Shown here: positions 1 to 30,061 of the stretch, piece after piece | Numbering within the stretch: position 1 is the stretch's first letter | How the letters are laid out: each line of letters begins with the position of its first letter | IMG/VR virus record: IMGVR_UViG_3300014914_000026 | Coordinates: 1-30,061 of that record | Strand: one strand, 5' to 3' | DNA: 30,061 bases | Position numbers and translations under genes: made by a program | Notes under the pieces: generated by a model | Seen by the model: the letters and a program-made list of their open reading frames with translations, nothing else | What the model was told of the DNA's origin: nothing | Databases searched by the model: none

Positions 1-123
1 AGCGGATCAGAATGCCTCAAAATACTCGGAGCCATAGACAGAATACTAAGCCTTTTTCCCACAAAGCCATAAGCACCCAACACCAAAAGGCTTAAATACA
101 CCAAACAACACAAAATTTTTTCG
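1..123. repeat. Left inverted terminal repeat (123 bp)
   Basis: Bases 1-123 are the exact reverse complement of 29939-30061; identity ends after ...caaaattttttcg. Confidence 0.97.
83..102 (+). promoter_or_regulatory. Archaeal BRE/TATA promoter inside the left ITR
   Basis: ccaaaaggCTTAAATAcacc with TATA at 92-98, about 37 nt before the ATG at 135; near-identical copy at 18493-18512. Confidence 0.7.
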
Positions 124-134
124 AGGGAAGGGTC

Positions 135-2630: not shown

Positions 2631-2837
2631 TCCCACTATAACTCCGCTACAGAACTCCGCTATGTCTCCGCTTGTCTCTTCGTAGGCTTCTCCATTCATT
2701 AGGTCTAAGATTTGCTTTAGGATGAAGAGAGCCGAGAGGAGAATAGTGTAGCCTAAACCTCCAAAGATTGTTGATAGCAGTCCAAGTAGGAAGTGGCATA
2801 TACTACCGATGTCAAGACCTACCTTTGTCGCCTTCAT
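2586..2837 (-). CDS. Small multi-TM membrane protein
   Basis: Probable start MKATKVGLD; hydrophobic helices around H-F-L-L-G and E-E-T-S-G-D motifs; directly follows the protease gene. Confidence 0.6.
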   Translation of the reverse strand: MKATKVGLDIGSICHFLLGLLSTIFGGLGYTILLSALFILKQILDLMNGEAYEETSGDIAEFCSGVIVGLVLLKILLFYAPFQ

Positions 2838-3603
2838 ATTTCCATCTAAGTCTTTCAAGTATTCCCATCCTACTTAAAGGTTTAACCCTCTTTCTCCAAG
2901 CTCTCCTTATAGCTTCATATTTTTCTCTTGTTTCTTTGAGCTTCCTCCCCAATTTTAGGTATTCTTTTATACCCATAGATTCACTTCCTCCTATCCATTC
3001 ATAGTAATGTGTATTATTGAATTTGACCCATGCGTGATATCTTAGTTCATTCATGTTCCACCAGTTGGTTTCTGGGTCTATTTCTGGATATTCCTCTGGG
3101 ACTTCATCAAGGGTGCTTTCCACCAGATACCACTTGTCTGATTCTGGGTCGTGAACTATAGGCCATGCGTGTCCGCCTAATATTTTGTCTCCTTTGTATA
3201 GGTATCCGAGACATTGATAGGCTTCTACTCCTATTATTAGGCATCCTCCTACTATGGCTATACTTGAGCCGTCGCAATCTCCTACTAATGTTGCTACTAC
3301 TTCACTTACTTTGTCCCAGTAGTCCGCTGTTAGAGTCCAGCATCTCTTATATTTTCCGAAGTATGCGTTATATGTATGTTTATCATCTGGAAGACCCATT
3401 CTGAAAGGATATTCTACCCTTTCTATGACTTTACGTGCTACTTGTCTCCATGTGGTTAATCCACCGAAGAACTCTTGACATATTTCTGAGTCTATATCAA
3501 GAAGTTCATTTAATTTGAATTTCCAGAATCTTTTAGCCTCTACTTTATCACCAACTTCTTTAGCACCTTTGAAAATTGGAAATTCAGTTTCTTTCCAAGT
3601 CAT
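2812..3603 (-). CDS. Transglutaminase-like (papain-fold) cysteine protease
   Basis: GDCDG (Cys), GGHAW (His) and WYLVEST (acidic residue) in the order typical of transglutaminase-like/BTLCP proteins; GGTGA RBS. Confidence 0.75.
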   Translation of the reverse strand: MTWKETEFPIFKGAKEVGDKVEAKRFWKFKLNELLDIDSEICQEFFGGLTTWRQVARKVIERVEYPFRMGLPDDKHTYNAYFGKYKRCWTLTADYWDKVSEVVATLVGDCDGSSIAIVGGCLIIGVEAYQCLGYLYKGDKILGGHAWPIVHDPESDKWYLVESTLDEVPEEYPEIDPETNWWNMNELRYHAWVKFNNTHYYEWIGGSESMGIKEYLKLGRKLKETREKYEAIRRAWRKRVKPLSRMGILERLRWKYEGDKGRS

Positions 3604-3619
3604 ATACCATCACCACTTA

Positions 3620-4327
3620 TTACATGCTTGTATAGTAGATTATATATACAGCTCCATCTCCTCCTTTCCCTCCATCACCACCACCTGCGTATAGGCTACC
3701 TCCTCCACCTCCACCTCCTGCTCCTGGAGATGAACCAGGTTCTCCTGATTCGCCTTTATCTCCTGTAACAGTCGATCCTCCATCTCCTCCAGATGCTATA
3801 TTGTTGGGTGTGTCAGCTCCTTTTCCTCCCTTGGTGTTCCCTGTTTCTCCTGAACTTCCAGATAGCATCGATATTTCTGAGTTTATAGCATATCCTGAAG
3901 GTGATCCTCCACCACCACCTGCTCCTGCTCCACCACTATTTGCTTTACCTCCTCCACCTCCTGAGCCTCCTCCTGCTGTAAGCCCAAAAGCAGTTGTATC
4001 TCCCCCTGCTGAACCTGGAGAGCCATTTTCATCTACAGCTCCTCCACTTCCTCCACTACCTCCTGCTCCTACTGTTATTGAATATGAAGAACCTGGAGTT
4101 ACTGGAATTCCTCTCGCTATTATAACCGCTCCTGAACCTCCTCCTCCACCACTACTTCCCGCAGATGAAGAACCTCCTCCACCTCCACCTCCTCCACCGC
4201 CTCCTCCAACTATTATTACATCGATTACATGAACGTCTTGTGGTGCTACCCATGTGTATGTTCCAGGTGTTGTAAAGGCATCTACCTTCTTTTTTATTGT
4301 AAACTTGATTGGATGTATTAGGCTCAT
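3620..4327 (-). CDS. Glycine-rich virion/tail-fibre-type protein
   Basis: FTTPGTYTWVAP...VIIVGGGGGGG...VTPGSSYSITVGAGG...GGDGAVYI matches the glycine-rich domain of phage tail proteins. Confidence 0.8.
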   Translation of the reverse strand: MSLIHPIKFTIKKKVDAFTTPGTYTWVAPQDVHVIDVIIVGGGGGGGGGGGGSSSAGSSGGGGGSGAVIIARGIPVTPGSSYSITVGAGGSGGSGGAVDENGSPGSAGGDTTAFGLTAGGGSGGGGGKANSGGAGAGGGGGSPSGYAINSEISMLSGSSGETGNTKGGKGADTPNNIASGGDGGSTVTGDKGESGEPGSSPGAGGGGGGGSLYAGGGDGGKGGDGAVYIIYYTSM

Positions 4328-4331
4328 ATTT

Positions 4332-4700
4332 TTATATCACCTCCATTACTTGTAGTATGAATAAGTATGGGAATGACCTTGGAGTTCCTGCTGTTTGAGT
4401 TATTGTTACTCTGAATTTTGCGTCGTAGGAGCATGTTATAGCAGGAATTCTGACTATAGGTATAGTTTGAGAGCCAGTAAATTTGAGTTCATCTGTTTTT
4501 CTTTGATTTGTTCCATCGACAGCAATATAGGTTCTTATTATAACTTCGTCTCCCTCTGCCATATTGCTTAGGTCTATTTGCCCCTCTATAATGTAGTCAT
4601 CAGACTGGTCTTCTAAGTTAATTATGTCTGTCTCCGTGTTAAGAGATTCTAAAGTAAGTGTTCCCTTGTATCTCTCTTTTCGTGCTATTCTAACTGGCAT
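4332..4700 (-). CDS. Putative beta-sandwich structural protein
   Basis: 122 aa with alternating beta-strand pattern; co-transcribed with fibre-type genes; GGTGG RBS. Confidence 0.55.
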   Translation of the reverse strand: MPVRIARKERYKGTLTLESLNTETDIINLEDQSDDYIIEGQIDLSNMAEGDEVIIRTYIAVDGTNQRKTDELKFTGSQTIPIVRIPAITCSYDAKFRVTITQTAGTPRSFPYLFILQVMEVI

Positions 4701-4710
4701 ATTTGTCCAC

Positions 4711-5292
4711 CTATCTTGTGAACTGGATGTAGTATCTTATTGTGAGAGTGTCTCCAGCGTCCCAGTCTATTGGGACTGCTGAGAATACTTTTCTTGCGAG
4801 TAGGTCTCCTCCTGCTGATGCGTTGAATACTCCTGCTTCTGATATGTTCATTGTTCCTGAGAGTCCATCTGCTGAAGAGAATGTTGCTTCAAGTTTAGCT
4901 GTGTCTCCTGATACTGATGTGGTCTCCTGTGATACAGTAGCGGATTTTCTTATGATTTCAGCCTCCAATTCAGTATCAGTTACCGCTTCGGATGTGGTTC
5001 CTGAGCCTATGCCAAGGTATCCGAATTTATCTTCTGTCAATCCAGCGAAGACTAGTCTTACTATACATGCTAGACCTACATTTGTGATTACGTTTTTCCT
5101 CCAGTATTCTAAGTCTATAAGTTTGGCTGGGAAGCTTGAGAAGGGACAGTCTCCAGCATCATCATCGATTAGTGGATTGGGTCTTAGGATTCTTCTTGGG
5201 GGTGCTCCTATGTGGTATTTAACTTTTCCATCTTTATCTTTGACTATGATTTCCACATATCCACTTATCTTACCGAAGTCCTTTGCGGACAT
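4711..5292 (-). CDS. Phage tail-fibre/collar N-terminal-domain-like protein
   Basis: Start reassigned to MSAKDF (GGAGGT RBS). NVITNVG...LGIGSGTT...DTELEAE..RK...EAGVFNA...LLARKVF...DTLTIRY resembles the tail-fibre anchoring domain of tailed phages (P2 gpH N-terminus/DUF3751-like). Confidence 0.65.
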   Translation of the reverse strand: MSAKDFGKISGYVEIIVKDKDGKVKYHIGAPPRRILRPNPLIDDDAGDCPFSSFPAKLIDLEYWRKNVITNVGLACIVRLVFAGLTEDKFGYLGIGSGTTSEAVTDTELEAEIIRKSATVSQETTSVSGDTAKLEATFSSADGLSGTMNISEAGVFNASAGGDLLARKVFSAVPIDWDAGDTLTIRYYIQFTR

Positions 5293-5367
5293 ACCTCCTC
5301 TATAAATGTGAGGAGAGGAGGGATTATTTATAAGTTTTGGAATTGATTTAATGGGGTTGGAAGAACT

Positions 5368-8300
5368 GTGGGTTGGCTTAGTGGATGGCAATATAGAAAA
5401 AGCCATGAAATAGAAGGCTCTACTGCTGGTGCGGTTACAGATTATCAGATAGGTATTAAAGTTTATAGAAGCACAGGGACAGATGGAACTGAAACAGAGA
5501 GTCTAATAACATGGGGTGTTGTATATGTTGGAACTAAATGTAGAGAAGATTTTGGAGACATAAGATTCACAGCAGATGATGGTGAAACCCTCTTAGACTA
5601 TTACATGGAGGAATATGAGTATGGTTCTTGGGCTAAATTCTGGGTGAAGATACCTTCTATACCTGCTAGTCCTGACTCTGTTACTATATATGTTTATTAT
5701 GGAAACTCTGATGCGACATATTCAGGAAGTGGAGAAGATACTTTCCAATTCTATGAAGATTTTGAAGATGGAACTTTGGGTTCTACACCTCCAGGCTGGA
5801 CTGTAGAAGGAAGTAGTGGAGACTATTTCCATGTGGATGACACTCATGTAAAGCAGGGTAGCAAAAGCGGTAAGTTACATGAAGATGGTGATGGAGAAGA
5901 ACTATCAGTTAAAGCTCATAAACATGAGACATCTACTGGTGGAGGAGCGGTTGTCCATGCCTGGATGATATTCAGCGGAGATAGGTCTGCCATAGCAGGA
6001 CTGGAACCTGGAGGATCAACCTCAGATTACTATGCCTCATACCTCCTATGTAGAGATGACAAAGACGACTGGAGACGTAACTCTGGTGGAACATTTTACA
6101 CGATTACAGAGTTCTCGGCTCCTTCAGACTTGGTGTGGTATAGACTGGAGATTTATCATCGCCCATCAGATGGTAAAGTTAAATATGTAAAGGATAGAAC
6201 CGAGGAATCAGATTGGGTTGATCCAAGAAGCTCTTGGAGTGAGATAGATGGAGTCCTTTTAAAAAGCCACTATAGGTATCCTGCTGACTCATGGTGGGAT
6301 CAAATCTATATTAGAAAGTATATAGACCCTGAGCCTAGTCATGGTTCCTGGGGAAGTGAGGAAACCTCTGGAGTATCTTATGTTCAGGAAATAACTGATG
6401 TAGGAAAAGTAGGAGATGCGTTATCAAGGGGAATAATTGATGTGGAAAAAGATTCGGGAAAGAGTGTAGATAGCTTAGTTCGTATTGTTGCTTTTCATAA
6501 AAGTGTTGTTGATATTGGTAAAGGTGTTGATAGTTTGAGTAAGTTTGTGGAATATTATAGAAGTTATATGGATGTGGGGAAAGGTTTAGATTCACTTAGT
6601 CTTACTGTTAATTATGTTAGGAGTTTTATTGATGTGAGTAAAGGATTAGATTACATTAGTATGTTTAGAGAAGTGTATAGAGATGTTATGGATAGAGTTT
6701 ATGGTGAGTTTTGGTTATCGACTTTTAGAGGAAAATCATTTTATGAAACTGTGAAAAGTGTTGATTTCATATCTAAGGATTATGATGGAAGACTAAGAGA
6801 TTCTGTTTTAGGTATAGATACTATTGGAAGAGATTTTGAGAAAGTCTATATTGATTATGGAATGGTCGCTGATTTTATCTCTAAAAGACCTCTTAAAAGT
6901 TTGGTTGATAGCTCTTTAGCTGTTGATTATTTTGAGAAGGTTGTAGAGTTTGTTAGAACGCTTTTTGATACTGGGGTTTCATCAGATTATCTTAAGAAGG
7001 AAATTGGAAAGTTAGCTAAAGATGTTGGAAAGACTGTTGATTATGTGGAGAAAACTCCAGCTAAGGTGTTAGTTGATACAAGTAGGATAATTGATTGGTA
7101 TAGTAAGTTTGCCTCTAAAATATTTTTCGATACATTTATTTCATTAGATTATCTTAGGAAAACTCCTGCTAAAAAGGTTGTTGATGTTGGGAAGGTTTCA
7201 GATTGGTATTGTAAGCTGGTTTCAGAATCCTTAATTGACACTTGTAAAGGTGTTGATTGGTATAGTAAAACTTCAACATTCTACAGAAGCTTTACAGATA
7301 TAGGCAAAACTGTAGATTACATAGAAAAAATGTCCATGAAGGCTCTCCTTGATATTGTTAAAAACATTGATTGGTTTACTAAGACTGCTATATTCTACAG
7401 GAACTTGTATGAGTTTGTAAATACCTCTGATTATTTAGCTAAAGATGTGCTTAGAAGTTTCCTTGATTATGCTGTTGGTGAGTTTTTGATTTCAAGTCTT
7501 CGTGGTAAGACCTTCAGGGAGACAATTAGAACTTTTGATTATCTATATAGAAACATTCTAAAAGTTTATGTTGATATTGGTAGAGCTTCTGATTACTTGA
7601 GAAAAGATAGAACCAAACCCATAAGTGATGTCTTTAAGGTTTTGGATTATGTTAAAAAGGAATCATTAAAATGTTTTGTTGATATAGGGAGGTCAGTTGA
7701 TTTCTTGTATAAAGAGTTCTTGAAAAGGACTTTTGATTCTGTGAGCGTTACTGATTGGTTTTTAAAGTTTGCTGTGAAGTTGTTTAGGGATGTTGTTTTA
7801 GGAAGGGATTGGTCTCTTAGAGATTCGCTTAAAGTCTTGTTGGAATTATGTAAAGGTTTAGACTATTTGAGTAGAGACACCACTAAGAGCTATTTGGATT
7901 ATAGTATATGTTCAGATTTTGTTTTGTTAGATATTGTGAAGTCCTTAGTTGAAGTTAGTAGAAGCTTTGACTATACCAGTAAAAGTATTCTTAGGAATTT
8001 CATTGATTATGCTTATGGTGAGCATTTCTTATCGACATTAAAGGGAAAGGAACTTAAAGATTATGTGAAAGTTTTTGATATTCTAAGTAGGGATTACTTG
8101 AAACTATTTTTTGACTTAATGAAGGGTGTTGATTTTATATATAAAGATTATGGCAAGAGGTTTGAGGAGTCCATTATAGGTGTAGATTTTGTTGAGAAAG
8201 GTTTTGGAATAAGACTTGAAGAGACAACAAAAGTGTATGAAAAAATTAATAGAGATATTTTGAAGAGCCTAATAGATTTGGGTAGGTCTCTTGAGCTATT

Positions 8301-8952
8301 TTACAAGGATGTGATTAAGAGTGTAATTGAGTATGTTAGTATATCAGATTACCTTAGTAAGGGTATTTCTAGAATTTTTGAGTTTGAAGCTCCTGTAGTT
8401 GGATATGTCTATCATATAAGAGGTAAGGGTTTCTATGAGACTGTAGGTGTTTCGGATAGAAGTATGATAGATGTAAACAAAAGATTTGTGGAATCTTTGA
8501 AACTTATTGAGAAAATGGCTAAGGATTATTCAACTTTGATAGATTTGGAAGTTTTGGGGAAAGGATTTACATCTAAGGATGTTACAAGTTCAATTATTGA
8601 GTTTGGAAGGGTATTAGAGCCTATTTTTAGTAGAGATATTTTAAGAGCTTTTAAGGAGTGGATTATTGTAAGAGATAAATACTGGAGAAAGATCATTGTT
8701 ACACTTGTAGATTATATACTGGATACTGGTGGAGTGGCAAGAGGTGTATCGAGACCTCTTAGGGATAAGGGTAAGGGAGTAGATGTTTTGACTAAAGTGG
8801 CTTATACGCTTGCTGGTCAAGATGTTAGAAGAGTTTACTGGCATAAGGTTTGGGGGGATATTATAGAGCCATCTGACCATAACTTAAATATAGAGGCTTG
8901 TAAAGTTATTCTTGAGGCGATGAAAAGAGTTAAAGATAAGTTGGGTGAATAG
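5368..8952 (+). CDS. Large adhesin/fibre protein: N-terminal DUF2341, lectin-like beta domain, long 18-20-aa repeat stalk
   Basis: WLSGWQYRK...DFGDIRFT..DG.TLLDY..E...FWVKIPSIPA...IYVYYGN is the DUF2341 pattern; aa ~335-1150 are D-x-G-K-x-x-D-(Y/W/F)-x-x-K repeats. Confidence 0.75.
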   Translation: MGWLSGWQYRKSHEIEGSTAGAVTDYQIGIKVYRSTGTDGTETESLITWGVVYVGTKCREDFGDIRFTADDGETLLDYYMEEYEYGSWAKFWVKIPSIPASPDSVTIYVYYGNSDATYSGSGEDTFQFYEDFEDGTLGSTPPGWTVEGSSGDYFHVDDTHVKQGSKSGKLHEDGDGEELSVKAHKHETSTGGGAVVHAWMIFSGDRSAIAGLEPGGSTSDYYASYLLCRDDKDDWRRNSGGTFYTITEFSAPSDLVWYRLEIYHRPSDGKVKYVKDRTEESDWVDPRSSWSEIDGVLLKSHYRYPADSWWDQIYIRKYIDPEPSHGSWGSEETSGVSYVQEITDVGKVGDALSRGIIDVEKDSGKSVDSLVRIVAFHKSVVDIGKGVDSLSKFVEYYRSYMDVGKGLDSLSLTVNYVRSFIDVSKGLDYISMFREVYRDVMDRVYGEFWLSTFRGKSFYETVKSVDFISKDYDGRLRDSVLGIDTIGRDFEKVYIDYGMVADFISKRPLKSLVDSSLAVDYFEKVVEFVRTLFDTGVSSDYLKKEIGKLAKDVGKTVDYVEKTPAKVLVDTSRIIDWYSKFASKIFFDTFISLDYLRKTPAKKVVDVGKVSDWYCKLVSESLIDTCKGVDWYSKTSTFYRSFTDIGKTVDYIEKMSMKALLDIVKNIDWFTKTAIFYRNLYEFVNTSDYLAKDVLRSFLDYAVGEFLISSLRGKTFRETIRTFDYLYRNILKVYVDIGRASDYLRKDRTKPISDVFKVLDYVKKESLKCFVDIGRSVDFLYKEFLKRTFDSVSVTDWFLKFAVKLFRDVVLGRDWSLRDSLKVLLELCKGLDYLSRDTTKSYLDYSICSDFVLLDIVKSLVEVSRSFDYTSKSILRNFIDYAYGEHFLSTLKGKELKDYVKVFDILSRDYLKLFFDLMKGVDFIYKDYGKRFEESIIGVDFVEKGFGIRLEETTKVYEKINRDILKSLIDLGRSLELFYKDVIKSVIEYVSISDYLSKGISRIFEFEAPVVGYVYHIRGKGFYETVGVSDRSMIDVNKRFVESLKLIEKMAKDYSTLIDLEVLGKGFTSKDVTSSIIEFGRVLEPIFSRDILRAFKEWIIVRDKYWRKIIVTLVDYILDTGGVARGVSRPLRDKGKGVDVLTKVAYTLAGQDVRRVYWHKVWGDIIEPSDHNLNIEACKVILEAMKRVKDKLGE

Positions 8953-8954
8953 GG

Positions 8955-9089
8955 ATGAAGGATTTAATTGCTAAGTTGATGTTGCTATATTTATATGCTA
9001 AACCAGAGGGAAGTCGAAGTTGGCTTCATTTAAAGTTTGGTGTTAAGAAGATATTAGAGGTGTTAGAGAAGGATGGGAAGCTTGAGTGA
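8955..9089 (+). CDS. Small hypothetical protein (44 aa, not in ORF track)
   Basis: MKDLIAKLMLLYLYAKPEGSRSWLHLKFGVKKILEVLEKDGKLE fills the gap between co-oriented genes; GGGTGA RBS. Confidence 0.5.
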   Translation: MKDLIAKLMLLYLYAKPEGSRSWLHLKFGVKKILEVLEKDGKLE

Positions 9090-9414
9090 AAAGATAAGCA
9101 ATCTGGAGGATTTGATTTCAAAGATGGAGTATGTAGAGGAAGGAGACTATGTATTTGCCAAGCATATTAATAATTTAAATGAAGCAAGTAAAATTGTTTT
9201 AGATTTCTGTAAGGAGGCTTATGATAAGTATAAGGAGAAGACTGGGGAGACTTTAGATGATGTAGAATTATGGCTTTATTTAGCTGAGAATAGAATTAAT
9301 ATGATGCGTTCTGTTAAGTATGGTGATATTGTTTTGACTAAAGATCATAACTTGATTATTGATAGTTTAAAGCCTTTGGAATTGGTTTTGAGAAGGCTTG
9401 AACAAAAACTTTAG
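9073..9414 (+). CDS. Helical protein with two GDxVxxxxxN motifs (putative fibre adaptor)
   Basis: EGDYVFAKHINNL and YGDIVLTKDHNLI resemble WGDIIEPSDHNLN at the end of the 1194-aa protein. Confidence 0.6.
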   Translation: MGSLSEKISNLEDLISKMEYVEEGDYVFAKHINNLNEASKIVLDFCKEAYDKYKEKTGETLDDVELWLYLAENRINMMRSVKYGDIVLTKDHNLIIDSLKPLELVLRRLEQKL

Positions 9415-10493
9415 AGGTATATTTTGACTACATCTCTTAATTTTTCACCTATTTTGTCCCAAGTTAAGTTGGGTCTTATGAATTTTTCTATGTGTTCCTT
9501 TACTTTTGCTTTGTATTCTTCATAATTGTTGAAGATTTCTATAGTTCTATCTACTGCTTTATCAATTATCATTTCAACCCCATATCCTATATGAATTGGA
9601 TTTGATGGTAAGACTTTATCGCTCTTTTTTGAGGGAATTAATGACCATTCAGGCATGTATTCCTCCCATGCTCCACCTTTTGCTCCTATTACTGGAACCC
9701 CTCTTGTTAGTGCTTCCATAGGTGGATGTTCCCACCCTCCTCCTCTTGATGTTAATGCGTATAGATCGCATAGATCGAAGAGTTCCATTTTTTGTTGTTC
9801 TGTAAGCCATCCAGATAATACTCTTCCTTCCATTTGGTATTTGGGTTTTCCTTTTTTGTATTCGATTGTTTCTGGGAAGTATCCTACAGCGTTTGCTGAT
9901 TTTACTACAAGTAGAACATTATTGTATTCTTTAAGTAGAGCTTGATAGTATCTTAGTAGTATGTCAAGTCCTTTCCTATATGGGCTATGAACTATGAAGC
10001 TTAGTATTAGTTTTAGGTTTCTTCGTTCCTTGAGTTTTGCTAAATGTTCAAATAGATTTGGAGGTTGTTTAGGGGCATCTATCCATTGTTCATCTATTCC
10101 ATGAGGTATTACATGAACTGGTTTTTTAACTCCTGATTTTATGTATGTTTCCTTAGATTTTTTGGATGGAACTATGAAGGCTTTTGCGTATTTAGTTAAT
10201 TTTACTGCGTATGGTGATAGTCTATCTGTATCTGCTACATCTACTCCTATTAATCCTGATGACCGACTAACTTTCTGTGCTAGTCTTTTTTCTAATTTTT
10301 GGAATAGGTAGAAGTATGGTTGTATTATTATTAGAGGTCTTGTGGTCATTGATATGTAAGGAAATGCTAGTTCATCTATTAGTTCTATTCTATAGTATTT
10401 TTTGAGTTGTTCATAATGTTTCATTCCAATTACATTAAAGCTAACTTTGTGATAAAAGGGAAACACATACCAAATTGATGTCGCTCTCATCAT
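9411..10493 (-). CDS. GT-B (GT4-like) glycosyltransferase
   Basis: IVPS..S, VIPHGID, RKGLDILL, SRGGGWEHPPMEALTRGVPVI. Confidence 0.9.
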   Translation of the reverse strand: MMRATSIWYVFPFYHKVSFNVIGMKHYEQLKKYYRIELIDELAFPYISMTTRPLIIIQPYFYLFQKLEKRLAQKVSRSSGLIGVDVADTDRLSPYAVKLTKYAKAFIVPSKKSKETYIKSGVKKPVHVIPHGIDEQWIDAPKQPPNLFEHLAKLKERRNLKLILSFIVHSPYRKGLDILLRYYQALLKEYNNVLLVVKSANAVGYFPETIEYKKGKPKYQMEGRVLSGWLTEQQKMELFDLCDLYALTSRGGGWEHPPMEALTRGVPVIGAKGGAWEEYMPEWSLIPSKKSDKVLPSNPIHIGYGVEMIIDKAVDRTIEIFNNYEEYKAKVKEHIEKFIRPNLTWDKIGEKLRDVVKIYL

Positions 10494-10828
10494 AGTCTTA
10501 TGGCATACCAGTATATTTTAACGTTATCGCTTCCAGATGGAGGAGGCGATGAATAATGAACTATTATCTCTGTGTCGGTTACTTCGTAATGGCTATATCC
10601 TGAAGCGTCTTGACTTCCAGCCCCAATTATAGCGATAGTGGGTTTGGCTGATAAGCCGTGTGGAATATGAAACTCTGTTTTGGCTCCATCTCCTGAGAAT
10701 ACTGCTAATCCACCATTTCTCTCTATTGGTGCTCTCTTATCAAGCTCCTCTAAAGCATCTACTACTGCGTTCCATTCCTCTGGTGTCAATATTTCAGTTC
10801 CTTTATATGTTAGACCCCACTTACTCAT
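10490..10828 (-). CDS. Small fibre-tip/H-lectin-like structural protein
   Basis: N-terminal GTEILTPEEWNAVVDAL; C-terminal SGDG..TEF.IPHGL...P...IYWYA beta domain typical of fibre tips. Confidence 0.6.
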   Translation of the reverse strand: MSKWGLTYKGTEILTPEEWNAVVDALEELDKRAPIERNGGLAVFSGDGAKTEFHIPHGLSAKPTIAIIGAGSQDASGYSHYEVTDTEIIVHYSSPPPSGSDNVKIYWYAIRL

Positions 10829-10833
10829 ATTTT

Positions 10834-10986
10834 CTACCTCCTCCTAAGTGGTCTTGGAGTTAAAGGTTGAGGTGATGATGTTCCTCCTACTTGTTGAGGT
10901 TGTATTTTTATATTTTGTGAGATTGATTTCTCTATCTCTTTTAGGGTTTGTATGAAGTTTTCAATGTGTTTATCCTTCTGGGACAT
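10834..10986 (-). CDS. Small hypothetical protein (50 aa, not in ORF track)
   Basis: MSQKDKHIENFIQTLKEIEKSISQNIKIQPQQVGGTSSPQPLTPRPLRRR fills the operon gap exactly. Confidence 0.55.
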   Translation of the reverse strand: MSQKDKHIENFIQTLKEIEKSISQNIKIQPQQVGGTSSPQPLTPRPLRRR

Positions 10987-10989
10987 TCT

Positions 10990-13900
10990 CTACATCCCCC
11001 TTTGTCTTCTTGCTAAGTATCTTGCTCTTCTCATTCCTCCTATGGCTTTATAGAACATTATCTCATAATCATCAAGACCCCATTCTTTAAGTGCTTCAAG
11101 TTCTTTGACAAACTCTTCTTCTGTTATTATTCCACTTGCGAAGTCTGATAGTAGCTCAGTTATGTATCTTCTGACTTCATCCATTATTGGTTTGAGCCTT
11201 ATGAACTGCTCCCACATTGCCTTCAGGACATTCTTTGTTTCTTCATCTACTGGTAGAGCGTCAATCATCTTGTATAATTGTCCGAGGGCGTATGACCTTG
11301 CTTGTGGTGAATACTCTGATAGCATCACCATTCTATCTACATCGCCTACCAGTTCTCTAAAGGCTCTATAGTGTCTTTCGTATCTTGAGGATGTCAGCAT
11401 TAGTTCTAGTTCTTTGTCTGTGTATCCGAAGTTCTTTAGCTGGTTTAGTATCTTTTTGTAGTCGTCTTCTGTTATTATGAAGTAAACATATAGGTCTTCT
11501 GCTCTTGAAATCATCTTCTTTACTTCGTCCATTATGGGTCTGAGGTCTATGTATTCAGCCCATATTGGTTGCCACTTCTCAGGTATCCTTTTAGCTTTGA
11601 CTACATCATCAAAGTATTCTCTTGCTTTTGGTATGTATTCTGATATTGTTGCGAGCATAGATGGTGTGGGTATGTATTCTCTCATTGATTGTCTTGCTTG
11701 AAGTATCATTTCTTCGAGTTCTACTCTTAGTTTCAGTATCTCCATTTCTTTATCTGTGAAGTTTATCATTTCCATGTATTCCTTAATCTTGCTTTCTATG
11801 TCCTCTGGTATCTTTATGTAGATTAAGGCTCTTCTGTAGGTGGTTAGAAGGCTCTTAATATCGTCAGCAATCGGCCTTATTTCGATATATTGCTTCCAAA
11901 TGGGCTTCCATTCATCTGGGACTAGTCTCTCGGTTAGGGCTTTGTCGATTAGGTCTTCCTTGATTACAAGGTATTCAGAGAGGGTGGCAAGCTGAGTTGG
12001 GGTGGGGATGTATTCCCTTATCGCTATGTTTACCATTCGGTCTAGAACTCCCTTTATGAACTCCTTTTCATAGTCTGTTAGTTTGGCTTTTTCTCCAACA
12101 TAATCTGCGAGTGCTTCTACATCCTCCCTTTTTACTACTCCAGTTGTAACTCTATACATCACATATCCAAGCCATCTTTGTGTCCAATACCTGACTCTTC
12201 TTATTGTGTAGATGTCTCTCCAGATGTTTAAGGAGTTTATGTATGCTGAGTAGTATTCCTCCACGAAGGCAAGTTTAAGTTCATCTGGTAGTTTTACTCC
12301 TGTTATTTTTTCATAATCCTTTGCGAAGAACTCATTTATTTTTTCGATTATGCCTGTTAGCTTCTCTTTGAACTCTTCATAGTTTTGTATGATGAATTCT
12401 GAATAGCCTCTGCTAAGGTCTCTTACTGTGTCTCTTAGTATGTCTAATGCTCTATCCATTAAGGCTCTAAGTTCAAGTAGTTTCCTTTCTGGAGGTAGAT
12501 ACATAACTGGATAGTTTACCCATCCAGTAACCCATTTGTTTTCTGAGGTGTCGAAGTATGAAACTTTGAAGCTTGCTGTTATGAAACCTGCGAGTAGTTT
12601 TTCAAGAGCGTTTATATTCCAAAAGCCTTCTTTGAATAGGTTGATGAATCCAGTCCTTAGTAGTGTTCTTTCATCTACTAAGGTGTTTATAGTTTCTGCT
12701 ACTGCTGTTAGAGGAACCCAATCTGGATGGAGACCTGTTGCCTGTAGGGTTCTTGAGAATAGTGATAGGTCGAGCTTTATTTCTGAGCTTGCTGATGGCT
12801 CTATTAGTTTCTCTCTAAAGGCTGATACTGGGGAAGTTATCTTGACTCCCCTTTCAGATAATATATTGTAGAGACCCCATCGGGTCATCCATCGCTGATC
12901 AATCTTTGTGGGTATGTCTGCGAGGGTATCTATCACTATAAGGTTGTCCGATGTGAAGCCTTTAATCCATGAGAATCTGGCATAGTCATGCCATTTCATG
13001 TAGGTCTTAAGAGCATCAAATAGCTTTGAGTATTTGAAGTTAAGTTCTATTGGTGCTATTGGTGTGAAGGCTCCTATTGTTTGTGCTACTTTCTCTAATG
13101 CTCTTCTCTCAGAGTCGGATATTGAGACCCATAGCATACCGCTTATACCTCTTGATATGAAGCTCCAGAGTCTTTCTGGGGAGGCGTATCTGAAGTGTAG
13201 GAGGTAGTAGAGATAGGCTATGTCTGGAATCATGCCTTGGGTTTGTATTGCCTTAGTAAAGTCTTCAAGTGAGTAGAATAGGTCTCTAACCATCATTCTA
13301 CATAGCTCTGAGGATGTGGGGAGCTTATGGACTAGACTCAAGGGTATGTTTCTGAATGTTCCGAATCTGTCTTTGACTTTGATCCACATATCTGGTGTGT
13401 ATTTGAAGAACCAGTCTAAAGTTACATCAGAATGTCCATAGATTGATAGGAAGAATTTTGCGATTTTGAGGATTTCCTTATACCTTTCTGTTGGTTTAAC
13501 TTCTCTGATTACACCTGTTGTTGGGTCTTTCTGTATTATGTAAGCCATGTTCCTTCTCAGGAACTCTATTATCTCATCATCTCTGGGAGCTATTATTGGG
13601 AGAACATTTCTCAACCAGTAGTTTATGAGCCTTCCAATAGGTCTTGTCAGCCATATAGCATATCCATATATCATACCTCGCCCTAGTTCATCCATCCATC
13701 TTCCAATATTAGTTGCGAATGTGTATAGTGAAGCCCCTATAATCTTTGATATGTCGATTTCAGTCTCATAGCCTATACCGAGAGGCTTTAGACTGATTTT
13801 ATGTTTCCATCCAAGTTCACCTATAGACCTTGCTACACCTCTCATTACCCATTGAGCCATTCTGAGGGGTATTTGAGCATAGAAGGGTATCCATGATACA

Positions 13901-15564
13901 GTCATGGCGTATATGCTACCTGTTGTAATAGCTTTCTTAACATAGTCTATTTTGAAGTATTCTGGGGTAGCCATTTGTTCTGCCTTAAGTATTTCCTCAT
14001 ATTTCTGTATTAGAAATTCATGTGTTTGTGATGCTATGGATTCTGGTAGTGGTTTAAGATAGTGCTCTGCTAATGGCTGTATAGCTTTACCTGACTTTTC
14101 CATTACTTGTATTGTTGAGTCCCAAAATTCCTTTGTTATTTCTGATATTATATTTGCCACACCTTTTTGTATATTTTGAAGTGAATCCCAGAAGAACTTG
14201 AGGAGATTCTGAAGACCTGATACTAATGCCTCTGACAGAGTTTTTATTTCTCCCCAGAATATATTGAATATTGATTTAAGGTTCACTCTTATCTCAGCAA
14301 ATATTTGGGGACTCATCCAAATTGATGGTAGAGAAGTTAGGGGAGTTGTAATGTATTCATTGAACCATTCTGGGAACCACGTTGGGAAGTTCATTATTGC
14401 GTTTACGAATCCTTGTGTGGTTTGGGCTAGTGAGTTAAAGCCTTTTGTTACATTGTCGATTATTTCTTTGAGTCCCTCCTGGAAGGGCTTTATTATACCT
14501 TCATTTATTGAATCAAATAATGGCTGTATTGTTGTAGCCCATGCTTTTTCTATTATATTGCTGTATATTGCTGGTGCTTCTTCTTTAAGGTTTACTAAGT
14601 ATTGAATGAATCCTGTTATGGTCTCTCCTATTTGTGATATTCCCATAATGGCTGTTACTATTCCTTCTGTTATTTGTGGGATACTTTCTAACCATCCTCT
14701 AAAGGTTTCAGTTATTGGTTCCATAAGGCTTTGTAATGTTGTGAATATTTGAGTTATTCCATTTATTATTGTGTCTGGTATTGTCGTTATTAGATTTATG
14801 ATGGGCTGTATTGCTTCGATTATAGAGTCAGGTATTGTTGATAGAAAATCTGTAACATTTGATATTAGTGATTCTATGCCAGATATACCTTTTTGTATCA
14901 TATCTGTAAGAGATTTTCCAAGTTTTTCTGTTAATGATTCGAGACTGCTGAATACTCCACTTATTGCTTCACCTATGTTGGTAATATAGTCAGATATTGA
15001 TGAAATAGCCTTTTGAATAACATTATTTAAGCTTTCTCCTAATGCCTGGAGATTATCTATAAGTCCTTGAGCAAGTTTACTTAAGCTATCAAATACACTA
15101 TTTAGACTGTCAAGAAGACTTGATGCGAGGTCTTTTAGTCCTTCAAATTGTTCTGAAACCCATTTAATGGCATCATATATAGGGTCTAGAACTACTGGTG
15201 CTATTTTTTGGACTTCACTCCAGATGTTTGTTATTGTAGAGTTTATAGTGTTTAAGATTGGTTTTATTGCTGTTTCAATGAAGGTTTCTATGCCAGATAT
15301 TATCCATGAGGCTATTGAACTAAGAATATCTGCGAACCAGTCTTTTAGTTGTCCAATTGGATCAACTATTCCTCCTACACCTGAAACTATTAGGTCTAAA
15401 TCTATTTCTTCTATTGTATATATGTCGGTTACTGTGATTGATAACGATTCCTTTTTTGGGAGATTAAGAGTAATCTGAGGTGGATTTGAGATGAGTATGT
15501 CGGATAGGATTTGGGCTGTTTTCTTTATCTCCTTGGGGTCTAACTCCTCCCTGATGGAGGACAT
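10990..15564 (-). CDS. Large minor virion protein (rudivirus terminal-fibre-like) with amphipathic helical N-terminal repeats
   Basis: 1524 aa, all-helical; C-terminal repeats REYIPTP..LAT.SEY...W..Y...RPI.D; size and position in the structural operon match the largest rudiviral virion protein. Confidence 0.6.
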   Translation of the reverse strand: MSSIREELDPKEIKKTAQILSDILISNPPQITLNLPKKESLSITVTDIYTIEEIDLDLIVSGVGGIVDPIGQLKDWFADILSSIASWIISGIETFIETAIKPILNTINSTITNIWSEVQKIAPVVLDPIYDAIKWVSEQFEGLKDLASSLLDSLNSVFDSLSKLAQGLIDNLQALGESLNNVIQKAISSISDYITNIGEAISGVFSSLESLTEKLGKSLTDMIQKGISGIESLISNVTDFLSTIPDSIIEAIQPIINLITTIPDTIINGITQIFTTLQSLMEPITETFRGWLESIPQITEGIVTAIMGISQIGETITGFIQYLVNLKEEAPAIYSNIIEKAWATTIQPLFDSINEGIIKPFQEGLKEIIDNVTKGFNSLAQTTQGFVNAIMNFPTWFPEWFNEYITTPLTSLPSIWMSPQIFAEIRVNLKSIFNIFWGEIKTLSEALVSGLQNLLKFFWDSLQNIQKGVANIISEITKEFWDSTIQVMEKSGKAIQPLAEHYLKPLPESIASQTHEFLIQKYEEILKAEQMATPEYFKIDYVKKAITTGSIYAMTVSWIPFYAQIPLRMAQWVMRGVARSIGELGWKHKISLKPLGIGYETEIDISKIIGASLYTFATNIGRWMDELGRGMIYGYAIWLTRPIGRLINYWLRNVLPIIAPRDDEIIEFLRRNMAYIIQKDPTTGVIREVKPTERYKEILKIAKFFLSIYGHSDVTLDWFFKYTPDMWIKVKDRFGTFRNIPLSLVHKLPTSSELCRMMVRDLFYSLEDFTKAIQTQGMIPDIAYLYYLLHFRYASPERLWSFISRGISGMLWVSISDSERRALEKVAQTIGAFTPIAPIELNFKYSKLFDALKTYMKWHDYARFSWIKGFTSDNLIVIDTLADIPTKIDQRWMTRWGLYNILSERGVKITSPVSAFREKLIEPSASSEIKLDLSLFSRTLQATGLHPDWVPLTAVAETINTLVDERTLLRTGFINLFKEGFWNINALEKLLAGFITASFKVSYFDTSENKWVTGWVNYPVMYLPPERKLLELRALMDRALDILRDTVRDLSRGYSEFIIQNYEEFKEKLTGIIEKINEFFAKDYEKITGVKLPDELKLAFVEEYYSAYINSLNIWRDIYTIRRVRYWTQRWLGYVMYRVTTGVVKREDVEALADYVGEKAKLTDYEKEFIKGVLDRMVNIAIREYIPTPTQLATLSEYLVIKEDLIDKALTERLVPDEWKPIWKQYIEIRPIADDIKSLLTTYRRALIYIKIPEDIESKIKEYMEMINFTDKEMEILKLRVELEEMILQARQSMREYIPTPSMLATISEYIPKAREYFDDVVKAKRIPEKWQPIWAEYIDLRPIMDEVKKMISRAEDLYVYFIITEDDYKKILNQLKNFGYTDKELELMLTSSRYERHYRAFRELVGDVDRMVMLSEYSPQARSYALGQLYKMIDALPVDEETKNVLKAMWEQFIRLKPIMDEVRRYITELLSDFASGIITEEEFVKELEALKEWGLDDYEIMFYKAIGGMRRARYLARRQRGM

Positions 15565-18512: not shown

Positions 18513-18543
18513 TTTGTGTATTGTTATAGATGGAGGTGGATGG

Positions 18544-19536
18544 ATGAGGGGGAATAGGGAAGCTATCCTAACGGAGGTCGATAATGCTATAAGGCTCTTT
18601 GGTGCTCAGGGTGTAAAGCCTACATTGAGAACTTTGTTCTACTATCTGGTTAGCAAGAATATCATACCTAACACCAGATCAGCATATAAGAGGCTGTCAA
18701 GGATTCTGGTTAAGGCGAGAAAGGAGGGGAGATATGCCTGGGATTTCCTTGAGGATAAGACAAGGGTGGTTCTCGGATACCGATCAGACCATAGATTTAG
18801 CGATGATGTCTTAGAAGACTTTGAGGAGAGATTAAAGTATAAGCTTGAGAGCATAGACATAAGTGAGATACTTAGTGAGCTATTTGACTGGATGATGCCT
18901 ACAATAGATGTTGAAATGTGGGCGGAGCAACCTATTATACCAGAGATATGGATAGAGAAGGAGGCTTTGTCTTCGACGATATATAATTGGACAAGAGACT
19001 TGAAGGTGAGAATAAGAGTCAATCGTGGTTACAGTAGTTGGACATTCATATACAACAATGTTGAAGACTTGAAGACTACACTATTGAGGCATGACAAGGT
19101 GGTTATACTATATCTTGGAGACTTAGACCCAAGCGGAGTGGATATTCAGAGATTTCTTGAGGAAGCCTTAGAATACTTTGGACTTGACAGAGAGAAGGTT
19201 GAGTTAAGGAGGGTTGCTGTTACACCAGAGCAAGTTGAGGAGTTTGATCTACCTCCAAGACCAGAGGATGCGGAGACTTTAGCTAAGTTACAGAGAGATA
19301 CAAGAAGTAAGAGCTATACTTATGACTATATAGTAGAGCTTGATAGCTTAGTTGCCTATGTTCCAGAGGAGTTTAGAAACATAGTTAGAAGTGCTATCTA
19401 TGACTGCTGGGATAAAGATATATACAACAAACTTAAAGACAGAGCTAAGGAGCTAAGCAATAAAGCTTTCAAGCTTTTAGTAGATTATAAGGAGAAGGCG
19501 AGAGAAAAGATATTGAATATGTTAAGAGAGGAGTGA
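18544..19536 (+). CDS. Stand-alone Spo11/TopoVI-A-like protein (5Y-CAP + TOPRIM; Mini-A-like)
   Basis: TLRTLFYYL (candidate catalytic Tyr), EIWIEK, RGYSS, YLGDLDPSGVDI (DxD), ELDSL; start reassigned to MRGNRE after a GGAGGTGG RBS. Confidence 0.8.
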   Translation: MRGNREAILTEVDNAIRLFGAQGVKPTLRTLFYYLVSKNIIPNTRSAYKRLSRILVKARKEGRYAWDFLEDKTRVVLGYRSDHRFSDDVLEDFEERLKYKLESIDISEILSELFDWMMPTIDVEMWAEQPIIPEIWIEKEALSSTIYNWTRDLKVRIRVNRGYSSWTFIYNNVEDLKTTLLRHDKVVILYLGDLDPSGVDIQRFLEEALEYFGLDREKVELRRVAVTPEQVEEFDLPPRPEDAETLAKLQRDTRSKSYTYDYIVELDSLVAYVPEEFRNIVRSAIYDCWDKDIYNKLKDRAKELSNKAFKLLVDYKEKAREKILNMLREE

Positions 19537-22981: not shown

Positions 22982-23677
22982 CTATATCTCCACCACAGTA
23001 TAGGGTATGAGTCTTACTTCATATTCGTTGCGGTTGGGTGGGTGAGAGAAGATAGGTGGGTCTTGGGGTCTAAGTGGCTCTCCTAAGCCTTCTCCGTGAT
23101 CCGAGGTGATTATGACTTTACCCTTGAGAAGTGGGAGTATTTGTTTTACGTGGCTTAATACCAGTTTTAGGTTGTCTTCGTAGGCTTTTAGTAGTATGCC
23201 TTTTTTCTTTGCTTCTTTCATTTTCATTATTTTCCATTCGTCTGATGTCATTTTCTTTGGTTTGTCTCTGTAGTATATTGGGATGTCGAGTTTTGTTTTT
23301 CCTATGTAGGGATGGTGTGGTTGTAGGAACCATAGTATTTTTGTTTTGAAGGGTTTTAGTCGGTGTCTATGGTTTTTGATGTAGTTTGTTATGTATTGTG
23401 GGGGTGAAGTTGATAGGTAATAGTCGAATCCTACATCTATTGTTTTTGTGAATTTGTCTTTTCTTAGGAGTGGGAAGGGGTGTCCTGTTACTATTGCTGA
23501 CATGGGGAATTTAGGCATTTTATTGAGGGTTCCTAATGTATTTGATGCGAGGCTTATTCTTGGCTCTACAGGGGATAAGTCCCAGAGTTTTTTGAAGTAA
23601 TCATATCTACAGGCGTCTAAGATTATAAGCCAGTCGCATGGTTCTGAATAGTTTATTGTTGGGATTTGAGAGTTCAT
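22982..23677 (-). CDS. Alkaline-phosphatase/sulfatase-superfamily enzyme
   Basis: IILDACRYD, SNT (candidate Thr nucleophile), QPHHPY, AYEDNL, ITSDHGE, SHP. Confidence 0.8.
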   Translation of the reverse strand: MNSQIPTINYSEPCDWLIILDACRYDYFKKLWDLSPVEPRISLASNTLGTLNKMPKFPMSAIVTGHPFPLLRKDKFTKTIDVGFDYYLSTSPPQYITNYIKNHRHRLKPFKTKILWFLQPHHPYIGKTKLDIPIYYRDKPKKMTSDEWKIMKMKEAKKKGILLKAYEDNLKLVLSHVKQILPLLKGKVIITSDHGEGLGEPLRPQDPPIFSHPPNRNEYEVRLIPYTVVEI

Positions 23678-29929: not shown

Positions 29930-29938
29930 GTCTATCCC

Positions 29939-30061
29939 CGAAAAAATTTTGTGTTGTTTGGTGTATTTAAGCCTTTTGGTGTTGGGTGCTTATGGCTTTG
30001 TGGGAAAAAGGCTTAGTATTCTGTCTATGGCTCCGAGTATTTTGAGGCATTCTGATCCGCT
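29939..30061. repeat. Right inverted terminal repeat (123 bp)
   Basis: Exact reverse complement of 1-123. Confidence 0.97.

Follow-up and report, generated by a model that had tools for sequence, protein, structure and literature searches.

To our knowledge, host recognition by filamentous archaeal viruses is known solely for SIRV2-type fibres. Chiyouvirus, the exemplar of Chiyouviridae (Ligamenvirales), was described by Duan et al. 2024 (PMC10848311), with ratification by ICTV in 2025 (PMC12451623). Kunpengvirus, a head-tailed Bathyarchaeia virus from 3300014911, a sister sample to that of the DNA analysed here, carries a 187-amino-acid (aa) "tail fiber protein", a small open reading frame (ORF), and a DUF2341 protein next to one another (Table S4, PMC10848311). 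Here we analysed the complete record IMGVR_UViG_3300014914_000026 (30,061 bp; sample 3300014914, Guaymas Basin), hereafter the window, and in particular its gene module at 2.8–9.4 kb, which encodes a 193-aa tail-fibre-adaptor-like protein, a 122-aa jelly-roll protein, a 235-aa glycine-rich protein, a 1194-aa DUF2341-stalk protein, and a 113-aa protein. This module probably serves host recognition in a Chiyouviridae-like filamentous virus, and the family of its adaptor-like protein is shared with tailed viruses. A sequence-only reading of this DNA, made by a model before the present analysis, had listed these ORFs as a divergently transcribed block, and all of them were recovered at the same positions.

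The window is regarded as a complete linear genome because inverted terminal repeats (ITRs) of 126 nt, with 99% complementary arms, lie at both ends. Two hallmarks of Adnaviria/Ligamenvirales are present, namely an SIRV2-type alpha-helical major capsid protein (MCP) and a linear double-stranded DNA genome with ITRs, along with two GT4 glycosyltransferases (GTs) 30–34% identical to their SSRV1 counterparts. The 1524-aa protein, rightly named the native fibre of this virus in the sequence-only reading, is 25–28% identical in its C-terminal part to rudiviral minor structural proteins of the P1070 type, resembles tape-measure proteins in its N-terminal part (PHROG comparison), and has full-length homologues in related contigs (E 1e-146). 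The backbone genes run in the order MCP, GT, 438 aa, 100/91 aa, 1524 aa, 112 aa, GT. This order is the same as in Chiyouvirus (PP467602) genes 14–20, and sizes are nearly identical; the Chiyouvirus genes encode the MCP (124 aa), a GT4, a minor structural protein of ~437 aa, a ~91-aa protein, a P1070-like protein of ~1530 aa, a 112-aa protein, and a gp44-type GT; this likeness was judged from gene order and lengths in Table S4 (PMC10848311). The hallmark genes of Caudoviricetes (HK97-fold capsid, portal, and large terminase) were absent from the window, as previously claimed: iterated hidden Markov models (HMMs) from archaeal tailed-virus loci matched 22–26 other loci each and zero window-derived loci, and Pfam and PHROG scans of the window proteins yielded no terminase, portal, or HK97 match. 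A megablast search with 25 kb of the window found zero similar sequences in the reference phage collection. Judged by its gene content, the window virus is a Chiyouviridae-like member of Ligamenvirales.

The adaptor-like protein lies in an ORF of 231 aa (4711–5406, minus strand). Since its homologues start at the position of Met39 (5292) and an AGGAGG sequence is located 2–7 nt upstream of this ATG, Met39 is almost certainly the true start, giving a predicted protein of 193 aa. This protein matched phrog_5417 (E 4.9e-20) and phrog_4176, annotated "tail fiber protein" (E 1.5e-12), and its C-terminal 130 aa matched "tail fiber" and "tail collar fiber" genes of Caudoviricetes in tblastn searches. 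Its sequence-level relatives in the reference phage collection were all from Caudoviricetes, with zero from Ligamenvirales, and metagenomic relatives were found in both rod-virus and tailed-virus contigs. Foldseek searches with the AlphaFold2 model returned a tail chain of HFTV1 (9h4p_BD, E 3e-6), GP4 fiber I (PDB 8jou), and tail-collar fibres in BFVD, with a probability of 1.0 and a template-modelling (TM) score of up to 0.86 on the target. The suggestion that this ORF encodes a domain resembling a tail-fibre anchor was therefore borne out for the shortened protein by PHROG, tblastn, and Foldseek. Together, these results support the notion that the 193-aa protein is homologous to proteins of the Gp80/PF12571 fibre-adaptor type, yet it is not a curated member of these families.

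The neighbouring 122-aa protein, called a beta-sandwich protein in the sequence-only reading, was indeed predicted to be an eight-stranded jelly roll. It gave zero family matches in profile scans, and its model resembled jelly rolls in the PDB as different as Ena3A (TM score 0.65), VP2 of infectious bursal disease virus (IBDV), and the lambda tail tip. The 122-aa family comprises 254 representative clusters, in some of which the domain is C-terminal or in tandem. In all seven relatives described below, its gene accompanies that of the 193-aa protein and adjoins it throughout, except in contig L003, where a LAGLIDADG homing-endonuclease gene (206 aa, 10611–11231) lies between the two. Kunpengvirus gene 14 and a 232-aa ORF of contig L115 were considered as 122-aa homologues and were rejected on comparison.

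We compared the window with metagenomic contigs and loci (L-numbers) retrieved via homologues of the 193-aa, large-fibre, and DUF2341 proteins. The 193-aa protein had 218 metagenomic homologues, the best 120 of which were 57–81% identical to it, and many of these were on contigs of 20–48 kb. Seven independent contigs from other samples (L003, L005, L008/L111, L009, L010, L026, and L112) combined the rudivirus-type backbone with the 193-aa, 122-aa, and stalk genes and with the 113-aa gene or domain; the capsid gene of L003 was outside the portion first compared and was found through L024. In L026, the two units diverge just as they do in the window; backbone genes flank them on either side, and a weakly related transglutaminase-like gene ends the leftward operon. 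Identities across these relatives were 64–67% for the 193-aa protein, 52–65% for the 122-aa protein, 52–67% for the MCP, and 26–41% for the large fibre, so that, by this measure, the 193- and 122-aa proteins rank as the most conserved of the clade, equalling or exceeding the MCP. With its core found alongside this backbone in seven other independent contigs, the module is a conserved trait of a large uncultured rod-virus clade and not a one-off graft. Two features make up the domain-level mosaicism of the window: the stalk's DUF2341 head, which is also present in L026, and the Gly_rich_2 protein in the variable slot; of the module genes compared, only the latter is unique to this genome. Contigs of this clade have been binned with metagenome-assembled genomes (MAGs) of Archaeoglobales, Bathyarchaeia, Thermoproteota, and Caldarchaeales.

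Homologues of the adaptor-like protein were also encoded in at least 14 loci that were marked as tailed by TerL, portal, or HK97 HMMs (L011–L015, L022, L032, L034, L036, L037, L040, L054, L061, and L088). The identity of the 193-aa protein to such tailed-virus copies reaches 46–56%, and no other backbone gene is shared. Genes 13 and 15 of Kunpengvirus (contig L036) are neighbouring homologues of module proteins; across the entire core, the gene 13 product shows 26% identity with the 193-aa protein (E 3e-7). Kunpengvirus gene 13 is also matched, at 40% identity (E 4e-33), by a 182-aa ORF located after the DUF2341 gene of the rod contig L115. In a midpoint-rooted maximum-likelihood tree, eight rod-virus members of the 193-aa family formed a single clade (100/100 support) inside an 88/95 clade, whose other members came from tailed or unassigned contigs, and the L115 copy fell into a separate 100/100 clade with Kunpengvirus. 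Because the label "rod" needs two changes on this tree, the family is seen to have crossed between the realms at least twice. The sequence-only reading had taken the window for a cross-realm chimera. The sharing with contigs carrying TerL, portal, or HK97 genes upholds the cross-realm part of this claim, and the recurrence of the core in further contigs shows that the window is not a singular case. The module is a mixture, with some parts long present in Ligamenvirales, some shared with tailed viruses, and a Gly-rich domain that has no close relative.

The gene downstream of the 122-aa gene occupies a variable slot: it is non-homologous between viruses and encodes 235 aa in the window and 238–548 aa elsewhere. 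In L003, L008, L009, L010, and L026, the slot protein starts with MS[LF]WH, mostly MS[LF]WHP, and the N-terminus of the 235-aa protein, MSLIHP, matches this conserved start. In three slot genes, an IKNLGA..(D)P.DA motif is present that resembles the beginning of phage tail fibres. The 235-aa protein itself was correctly described as glycine-rich and tail-type: it matched Gly_rich_2 with 66.1 bits (cut-off 24.3) over profile positions 1–226 of 226, and PHROG tail families down to E 1.8e-16. In a PDB sequence search, the tail fibre of cyanophage Pam3 was matched weakly (E 0.0014), and tblastn against phages gave zero matches. No close homologue was found in any collection searched (top match 72 bits), and the contexts of the two best matches were unrelated to the module. 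An antisense proline-rich ORF of 143 aa (3801–4232, plus strand) mirrors the GGN codons of this gene and is almost certainly not a gene. The 263-aa protein encoded by the last gene of the leftward operon may also be part of the module; its GDCD...GHA core aligned weakly (E 8e-7) with a 261-aa protein at the equivalent position in L026, and no further relatives were found among the compared loci.

In the rightward unit, the 1194-aa protein had been read as a DUF2341 domain, a lectin, and a repeat stalk. The first and the last of these were confirmed: DUF2341 spans aa 61–146 (75.8 bits, cut-off 23.4), and about 37 repeats span approximately aa 345–1010, with autocorrelation peaks at 18, 36, and 54 and a D[YWF]xxK motif spaced by 18. 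The lectin was not detected as such, with no Pfam match to LamG (PF13385/PF06439) at E <= 0.1, and PF13385 or PF06439 is present only in homologues that have the same head. The head had 238 homologues, mostly archaeal, in contigs of both viral and cellular size. An adaptor-family gene is found no more than a few kb from the DUF2341 gene, and often adjoins it, in at least 10 DUF2341 loci (about a dozen including adaptor-anchored loci). The DUF2341-stalk fusion occurred only in the window and L026, and the stalk proteins of the other relatives have no head. The stalk region is homologous to stalk proteins of 500–740 aa in L003, L005, L008, L010, and L112. The 1194-aa protein gave one weak match in tblastn searches against phages, and PDB sequence searches with the module proteins gave marginal matches only.

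The 113-aa protein, previously regarded as a fibre-tip protein, shares 42–47% identity with stand-alone ORFs of L026 and L005, and 29–47% with the last ~110 aa both of the L008, L003, L112, and L115 stalk proteins and of a 217-aa ORF of L009. Similarity to the C-terminal end of the 1194-aa protein is also seen in its last 31 aa (E 2e-4). Because the same domain ends the stalk proteins of relatives, these comparisons identify the 113-aa protein as a predicted C-terminal cap, anchor, or assembly domain in free form; the ORF is present as listed, and a role as an independent tip is not supported.

GC content is 0.32–0.35 at 7–10 kb compared with 0.36–0.44 elsewhere, coinciding with the K/D/Y/F/V-rich repeats and the 113-aa gene. 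The L115 DUF2341 domain is interrupted by ~340 residues (query 3–77 aligned to 5–71, and 71–136 to 412–478) in what looks, from the alignment, like an intein, and PF14528 is carried by several DUF2341 homologues. An N-terminal helix motif, T/S-x-E/D-E/D-W-N-x-h-h-D, recurs in the 112-aa protein of the window (10490–10828, minus strand; LTPEEWNAVVDAL), rudiviral P564 proteins (SSRV1 ORF22-595; SVEDWNNFVNDL), and the beta-helix protein of Kunpengvirus (gene 16; LTATEWNALLDH), and it may represent a common attachment or trimerisation element.

From these results, the reading we favour, with reasonable though far from complete confidence, is that the region at 2.8–9.4 kb is a host-recognition cluster of a Chiyouviridae-like filamentous virus, consisting of adaptor, jelly roll, interchangeable slot protein, and stalk fibre, which would act together with the P1070-like fibre, and whose adaptor has been exchanged with tailed viruses at least twice. 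In this model, the adaptor and jelly-roll proteins would sit at the virion end, and interchangeable receptor-binding proteins would dock there through the conserved N-terminal peptide MS[LF]WH. The slot protein would keep this short constant N-terminus, and its distal domain would differ from virus to virus, being Gly_rich_2 in the window. The stalk protein would be a second fibre, the C-terminal domain of which is either fused or, as here, supplied by a separate ORF, and in the window it would have gained an N-terminal DUF2341/LamG-type head that is probably glycan-binding. The ancestor of the rod clade would already have carried the adaptor gene. Docking is proposed because a conserved anchor combined with a hypervariable distal gene is the pattern of a receptor-binding module. 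The branched terminal structure suggested in the sequence-only reading is pure conjecture.

Several results weigh against this reading. The 193-aa protein missed the Pfam cut-off for Gp80 (PF23140; 20.6 bits, cut-off 27) and did not match the PF12571 tail-collar fibre in the Pfam scan, and its AlphaFold2 model was of moderate confidence (predicted TM score 0.71; pLDDT, the predicted local distance difference test, 73.7), with residues 33–65 unmodelled. The modelled jelly-roll fold of the 122-aa protein is generic and gives no functional clue. L110, L113, and L114 are backbone-positive contigs in which the module was not seen in the part covered. The midpoint root means that the direction of transfer is not fixed by the tree. 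The view of the module as a tailed-phage one is weakened, in addition, by gene 21 of Chiyouvirus, already annotated "Potential terminal fiber protein" with PF12571 (PMC10848311 Table S4).

The strongest rival is old vertical inheritance, in which adaptor-like and DUF2341 proteins are ancestral in Ligamenvirales, tailed viruses obtained their copies from filamentous viruses or hosts, and nothing was grafted. We consider this unlikely. In Foldseek searches, the adaptor model matched proteins of the lipothrixviruses AFV9 (B2CRN3, E 5.7e-10), SIFV, SIFV2, SBFV2, and AFV2, with E values up to 1.8e-4, and these model-based matches leave room for such inheritance. DUF2341 passes the Pfam cut-off in SSRV1 ORF22-595 and SIRV7 ORF38, representatives of the conserved rudiviral P564-type structural protein, and HHblits labelled tailed-virus DUF2341 proteins, other than that of the window, "SIRV1 gp562 homolog" with 99.4–99.8% (PMC10848311). 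In L115, the DUF2341 gene is found downstream of that for the large fibre, an arrangement also seen for P564 in SIRV7. A trimmed profile-profile comparison of window-type DUF2341 with rudiviral P564 gave E 1.4e-4 (probability 53%), with the alignment confined to 72 columns of the DUF2341 core; the probability was 2% when an untrimmed full-length DUF2341 alignment was set against a single rudiviral sequence with hhalign. Against ancestry in the order stand the exclusively Caudoviricetes relatives of the 193-aa protein among reference phages, the single tight clade of rod copies amid diverse tailed copies with a second, unrelated type in L115, and the high identity to tailed copies even though no other backbone gene is common. 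The sequence-only reading had called the domains typical of Caudoviricetes tails and cell-surface proteins, and had named homologues standard in known Ligamenvirales as what would refute its view. Several of the families do occur mostly in such tails; DUF2341 in rudiviral P564, the adaptor fold in lipothrixviruses, and Chiyouvirus gene 21 refute that view in part.

A second possibility is that the DUF2341/LamG head and the Gly_rich_2 protein were captured from cellular archaeal surface proteins, in which case the "tailed-phage type" label would reflect database bias. Many relatives of both domains are in fact cellular, which also weakens the view of the module as a tailed-phage one. Among the DUF2341 homologues, the named ones are from Heimdall-, Hod-, Bathy-, and Aenigmarchaeota, Thermoplasmatota, and Archaeoglobus MAGs, several of them on contigs of >100 kb with cell-surface domains, and Gly_rich_2 relatives include cellular records such as those from Streptoalloteichus and a Nanoarchaeota MAG. 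Conversely, 78 distinct IMG/VR viral contigs contain the DUF2341 head, more than 35 of the fetched loci carry terminase, portal, or HK97 genes, and DUF2341 and adaptor-family genes recurrently lie close together. MAG contigs may themselves be viruses, as the window is. We therefore hold cellular capture to be improbable.

It is slightly less probable still that the module is real and serves a purpose other than adsorption, such as host-surface modification, superinfection exclusion, or egress. The virion location of the module proteins is a prediction from their sequences, host proteins could be targets of the transglutaminase-like protein, and the neighbouring genes encode GTs. However, every recognisable domain belongs to fibre or tail protein families, the anchor-and-variable-gene pattern is that of receptor-binding modules, and the module adjoins the P1070-like fibre gene. 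An assembly chimera of a tailed-virus fragment and a rudivirus-like contig, to which the low GC and the divergent transcription at 5.3 kb might point, is exceedingly improbable and, as far as can be judged from the sequence, excluded, given the ITRs at both ends, the same order and orientation in L026 (another sample, with backbone on both sides) and six further contigs, the location of the low-GC repeats within a single uninterrupted ORF, and the N-terminal clade motif retained by the variable gene.

The host-recognition reading also has a broader form, which we advance tentatively and consider possible rather than probable: a plug-in adsorption apparatus in a globally distributed uncultured rod-virus clade, in which a conserved adaptor and jelly roll, docked receptor binders, and a stalk with swappable heads are assembled from parts repeatedly traded among host-sharing Adnaviria and Duplodnaviria. 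Host-recognition cassettes would, in that case, form a common gene pool across archaeal viral realms. The five-gene module, with its conserved anchor and hypervariable slot, provides a testable host-range model for a clade known only from metagenomes. It also offers a concrete, dated-by-identity case of gene exchange, with shared proteins 40–56% identical, between two realms that have no common structural ancestry. As a marker for finding such viruses, the 193-aa protein outperforms the capsid protein. The family and a fibre-like gene were already known; the multi-gene module, the variable slot, and the cross-realm phylogeny were not described in the literature searched.

The features discussed above are compiled in Table 1. 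The sequence-only reading had placed the foreign block at 3620–10828; the part at 9411–10828, with the GT4 and 112-aa genes, belongs to the rudivirus-type backbone, and the module proper is that at 2.8–9.4 kb. In sum, what was observed in that reading is confirmed, and its interpretation is partly supported. TATA-like elements, together with the leftward operon's Shine-Dalgarno sequence, lie in the divergent intergenic region, which may function as a promoter.

Table 1. Coordinates of the module, neighbouring backbone genes, and genome ends in the window
Feature	Position	Strand	Basis or remark
Left ITR	1..126		Pairs with 29936..30061
263-aa transglutaminase-like (papain-type Cys-His) protein; last gene of leftward operon	2812..3603	-	Pfam Transglut_core, weak (E 0.009)
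235-aa Gly_rich_2 protein in variable slot; candidate receptor-binding protein	3620..4327	-	PF21722
122-aa jelly-roll protein, partner of adaptor	4332..4700	-	AlphaFold2 pLDDT 98.1, 8 strands, all-beta
193-aa tail-fibre-adaptor-like protein	4711..5292	-	PHROG, tblastn, Foldseek; ORF open to 5406 (231 aa), likely ATG 5292
Divergent intergenic region	5293..5367		TTTATAA at ~5327-5333; AGGAGG (minus strand) at 5294-5299
1194-aa protein	5368..8952	+	DUF2341 head, 18-residue-repeat stalk, C-terminal region
N-terminal DUF2341 domain and ~190-aa domain (LamG-like in homologues), "head" of the 1194-aa protein	5368..6360	+	PF10102
18-residue-repeat stalk (~37 units) and C-terminal region	6400..8952	+	Autocorrelation; D[YWF]xxK motif
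113-aa protein, free form of stalk C-terminal domain	9073..9414	+	Comparison with relatives
GT4 glycosyltransferase, SIRV2 gp44 type; backbone gene	9411..10493	-	34% identity to SSRV1 ORF27-343 (E 8e-51); phrog_2170 (E 4e-47); position as Chiyouvirus gene 20
112-aa conserved protein; backbone gene between large fibre gene and GT	10490..10828	-	38-64% identity in six relatives; length and position as Chiyouvirus gene 19
1524-aa P1070-like terminal-fibre protein	10990..15564	-	Residues 1183-1399 match rudiviral minor structural proteins
SIRV2-type MCP, 124 aa	19618..19992	-	PF12193 Sulf_coat_C, 76.7 bits (cut-off 25.2); 37% identity to SSRV1 MCP
Right ITR	29936..30061		Pairs with 1..126

Outside the module, a 340-aa protein (18514–19536, plus strand) matched phrog_6247, "DNA topoisomerase" (E 1.3e-49); it is 33% identical to a protein in L003, has no counterpart in the SSRV1 comparison, and splits the MCP–GT pair on the opposite strand. 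A 231-aa protein whose function is not known (22982–23677, minus strand) is 53–57% identical to proteins in L026 and L114. Its L026 homologue adjoins the module rather than the methyltransferase, and gene order outside the structural block is therefore fluid. L005 encodes a D5-type primase-helicase (PF08706, PF19263; 6640–8259) just upstream of the module, which has no counterpart in the window; replication modules therefore vary across the clade. The window is identical to QMZE01000005.1, binned in the Guaymas Basin MAG "Archaeoglobales archaeon B35_G2", and such binning is no proof of host. A second contig of this MAG, QMZE01000010.1 (16.3 kb), has a copy of the 193-aa gene that is 77% identical, so that B35_G2 holds at least two viral contigs.

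Compared with the described viruses, the window is closest in layout to Chiyouvirus. Both encode an FkbM methyltransferase (detected with Pfam in the window), and Chiyouvirus has a small tail-collar-fibre-type protein after the GT; this protein has 151 aa (PF12571), versus 193 aa in the window. A DUF2341 and a Gly-rich protein are both present in the window and are not given for Chiyouvirus in Table S4 (PMC10848311). Chiyouvirus carries two mini-CRISPR arrays and a Cas2 homologue, whereas the window has no such array. Because of this absence and the empty megablast search against reference phages, the window is not Chiyouvirus itself.

With Rudiviridae (SIRV2 P1070/P564, SIRV1 ORF562, SSRV1 ORF23-1115/ORF22-595), the window has in common the P1070-type C-terminal region, two GT4 genes, and the SIRV2-type MCP. 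In P564, DUF2341 is at residues 270–375 after an unrelated N-terminal half, whereas in the window it is N-terminal and followed by the 18-residue-repeat stalk, which is missing from rudiviruses. A tblastn search with the 1194-aa protein gave no rudiviral P564 match, and tblastn-type searches found no rudivirus homologues of the 193-, 122-, and 235-aa proteins. The lipothrixvirus proteins that match the adaptor model (AFV9 B2CRN3, SIFV gp60, SIFV2 gp53-like, SBFV2, and AFV2 ORF338) belong to the same viral order, gave no sequence-level match to the 193-aa protein, and are mostly ~340 aa long with extra domains.

The 193-aa protein has the fold of the small fibre adaptors of Caudoviricetes, such as Gp80 (PF23140)/GP4, PF12571, the P1 gpR type, Kunpengvirus gene 13, and the HFTV1 protein. 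Unlike these adaptors, it is encoded in a genome that has no tail, portal, or terminase genes, and its N-terminus is extended by 60 residues, which include a beta-hairpin and a variable loop containing Cys. The neighbourhood of adaptor and DUF2341 genes is, in turn, common to the window, Kunpengvirus, and other tailed-virus contigs.

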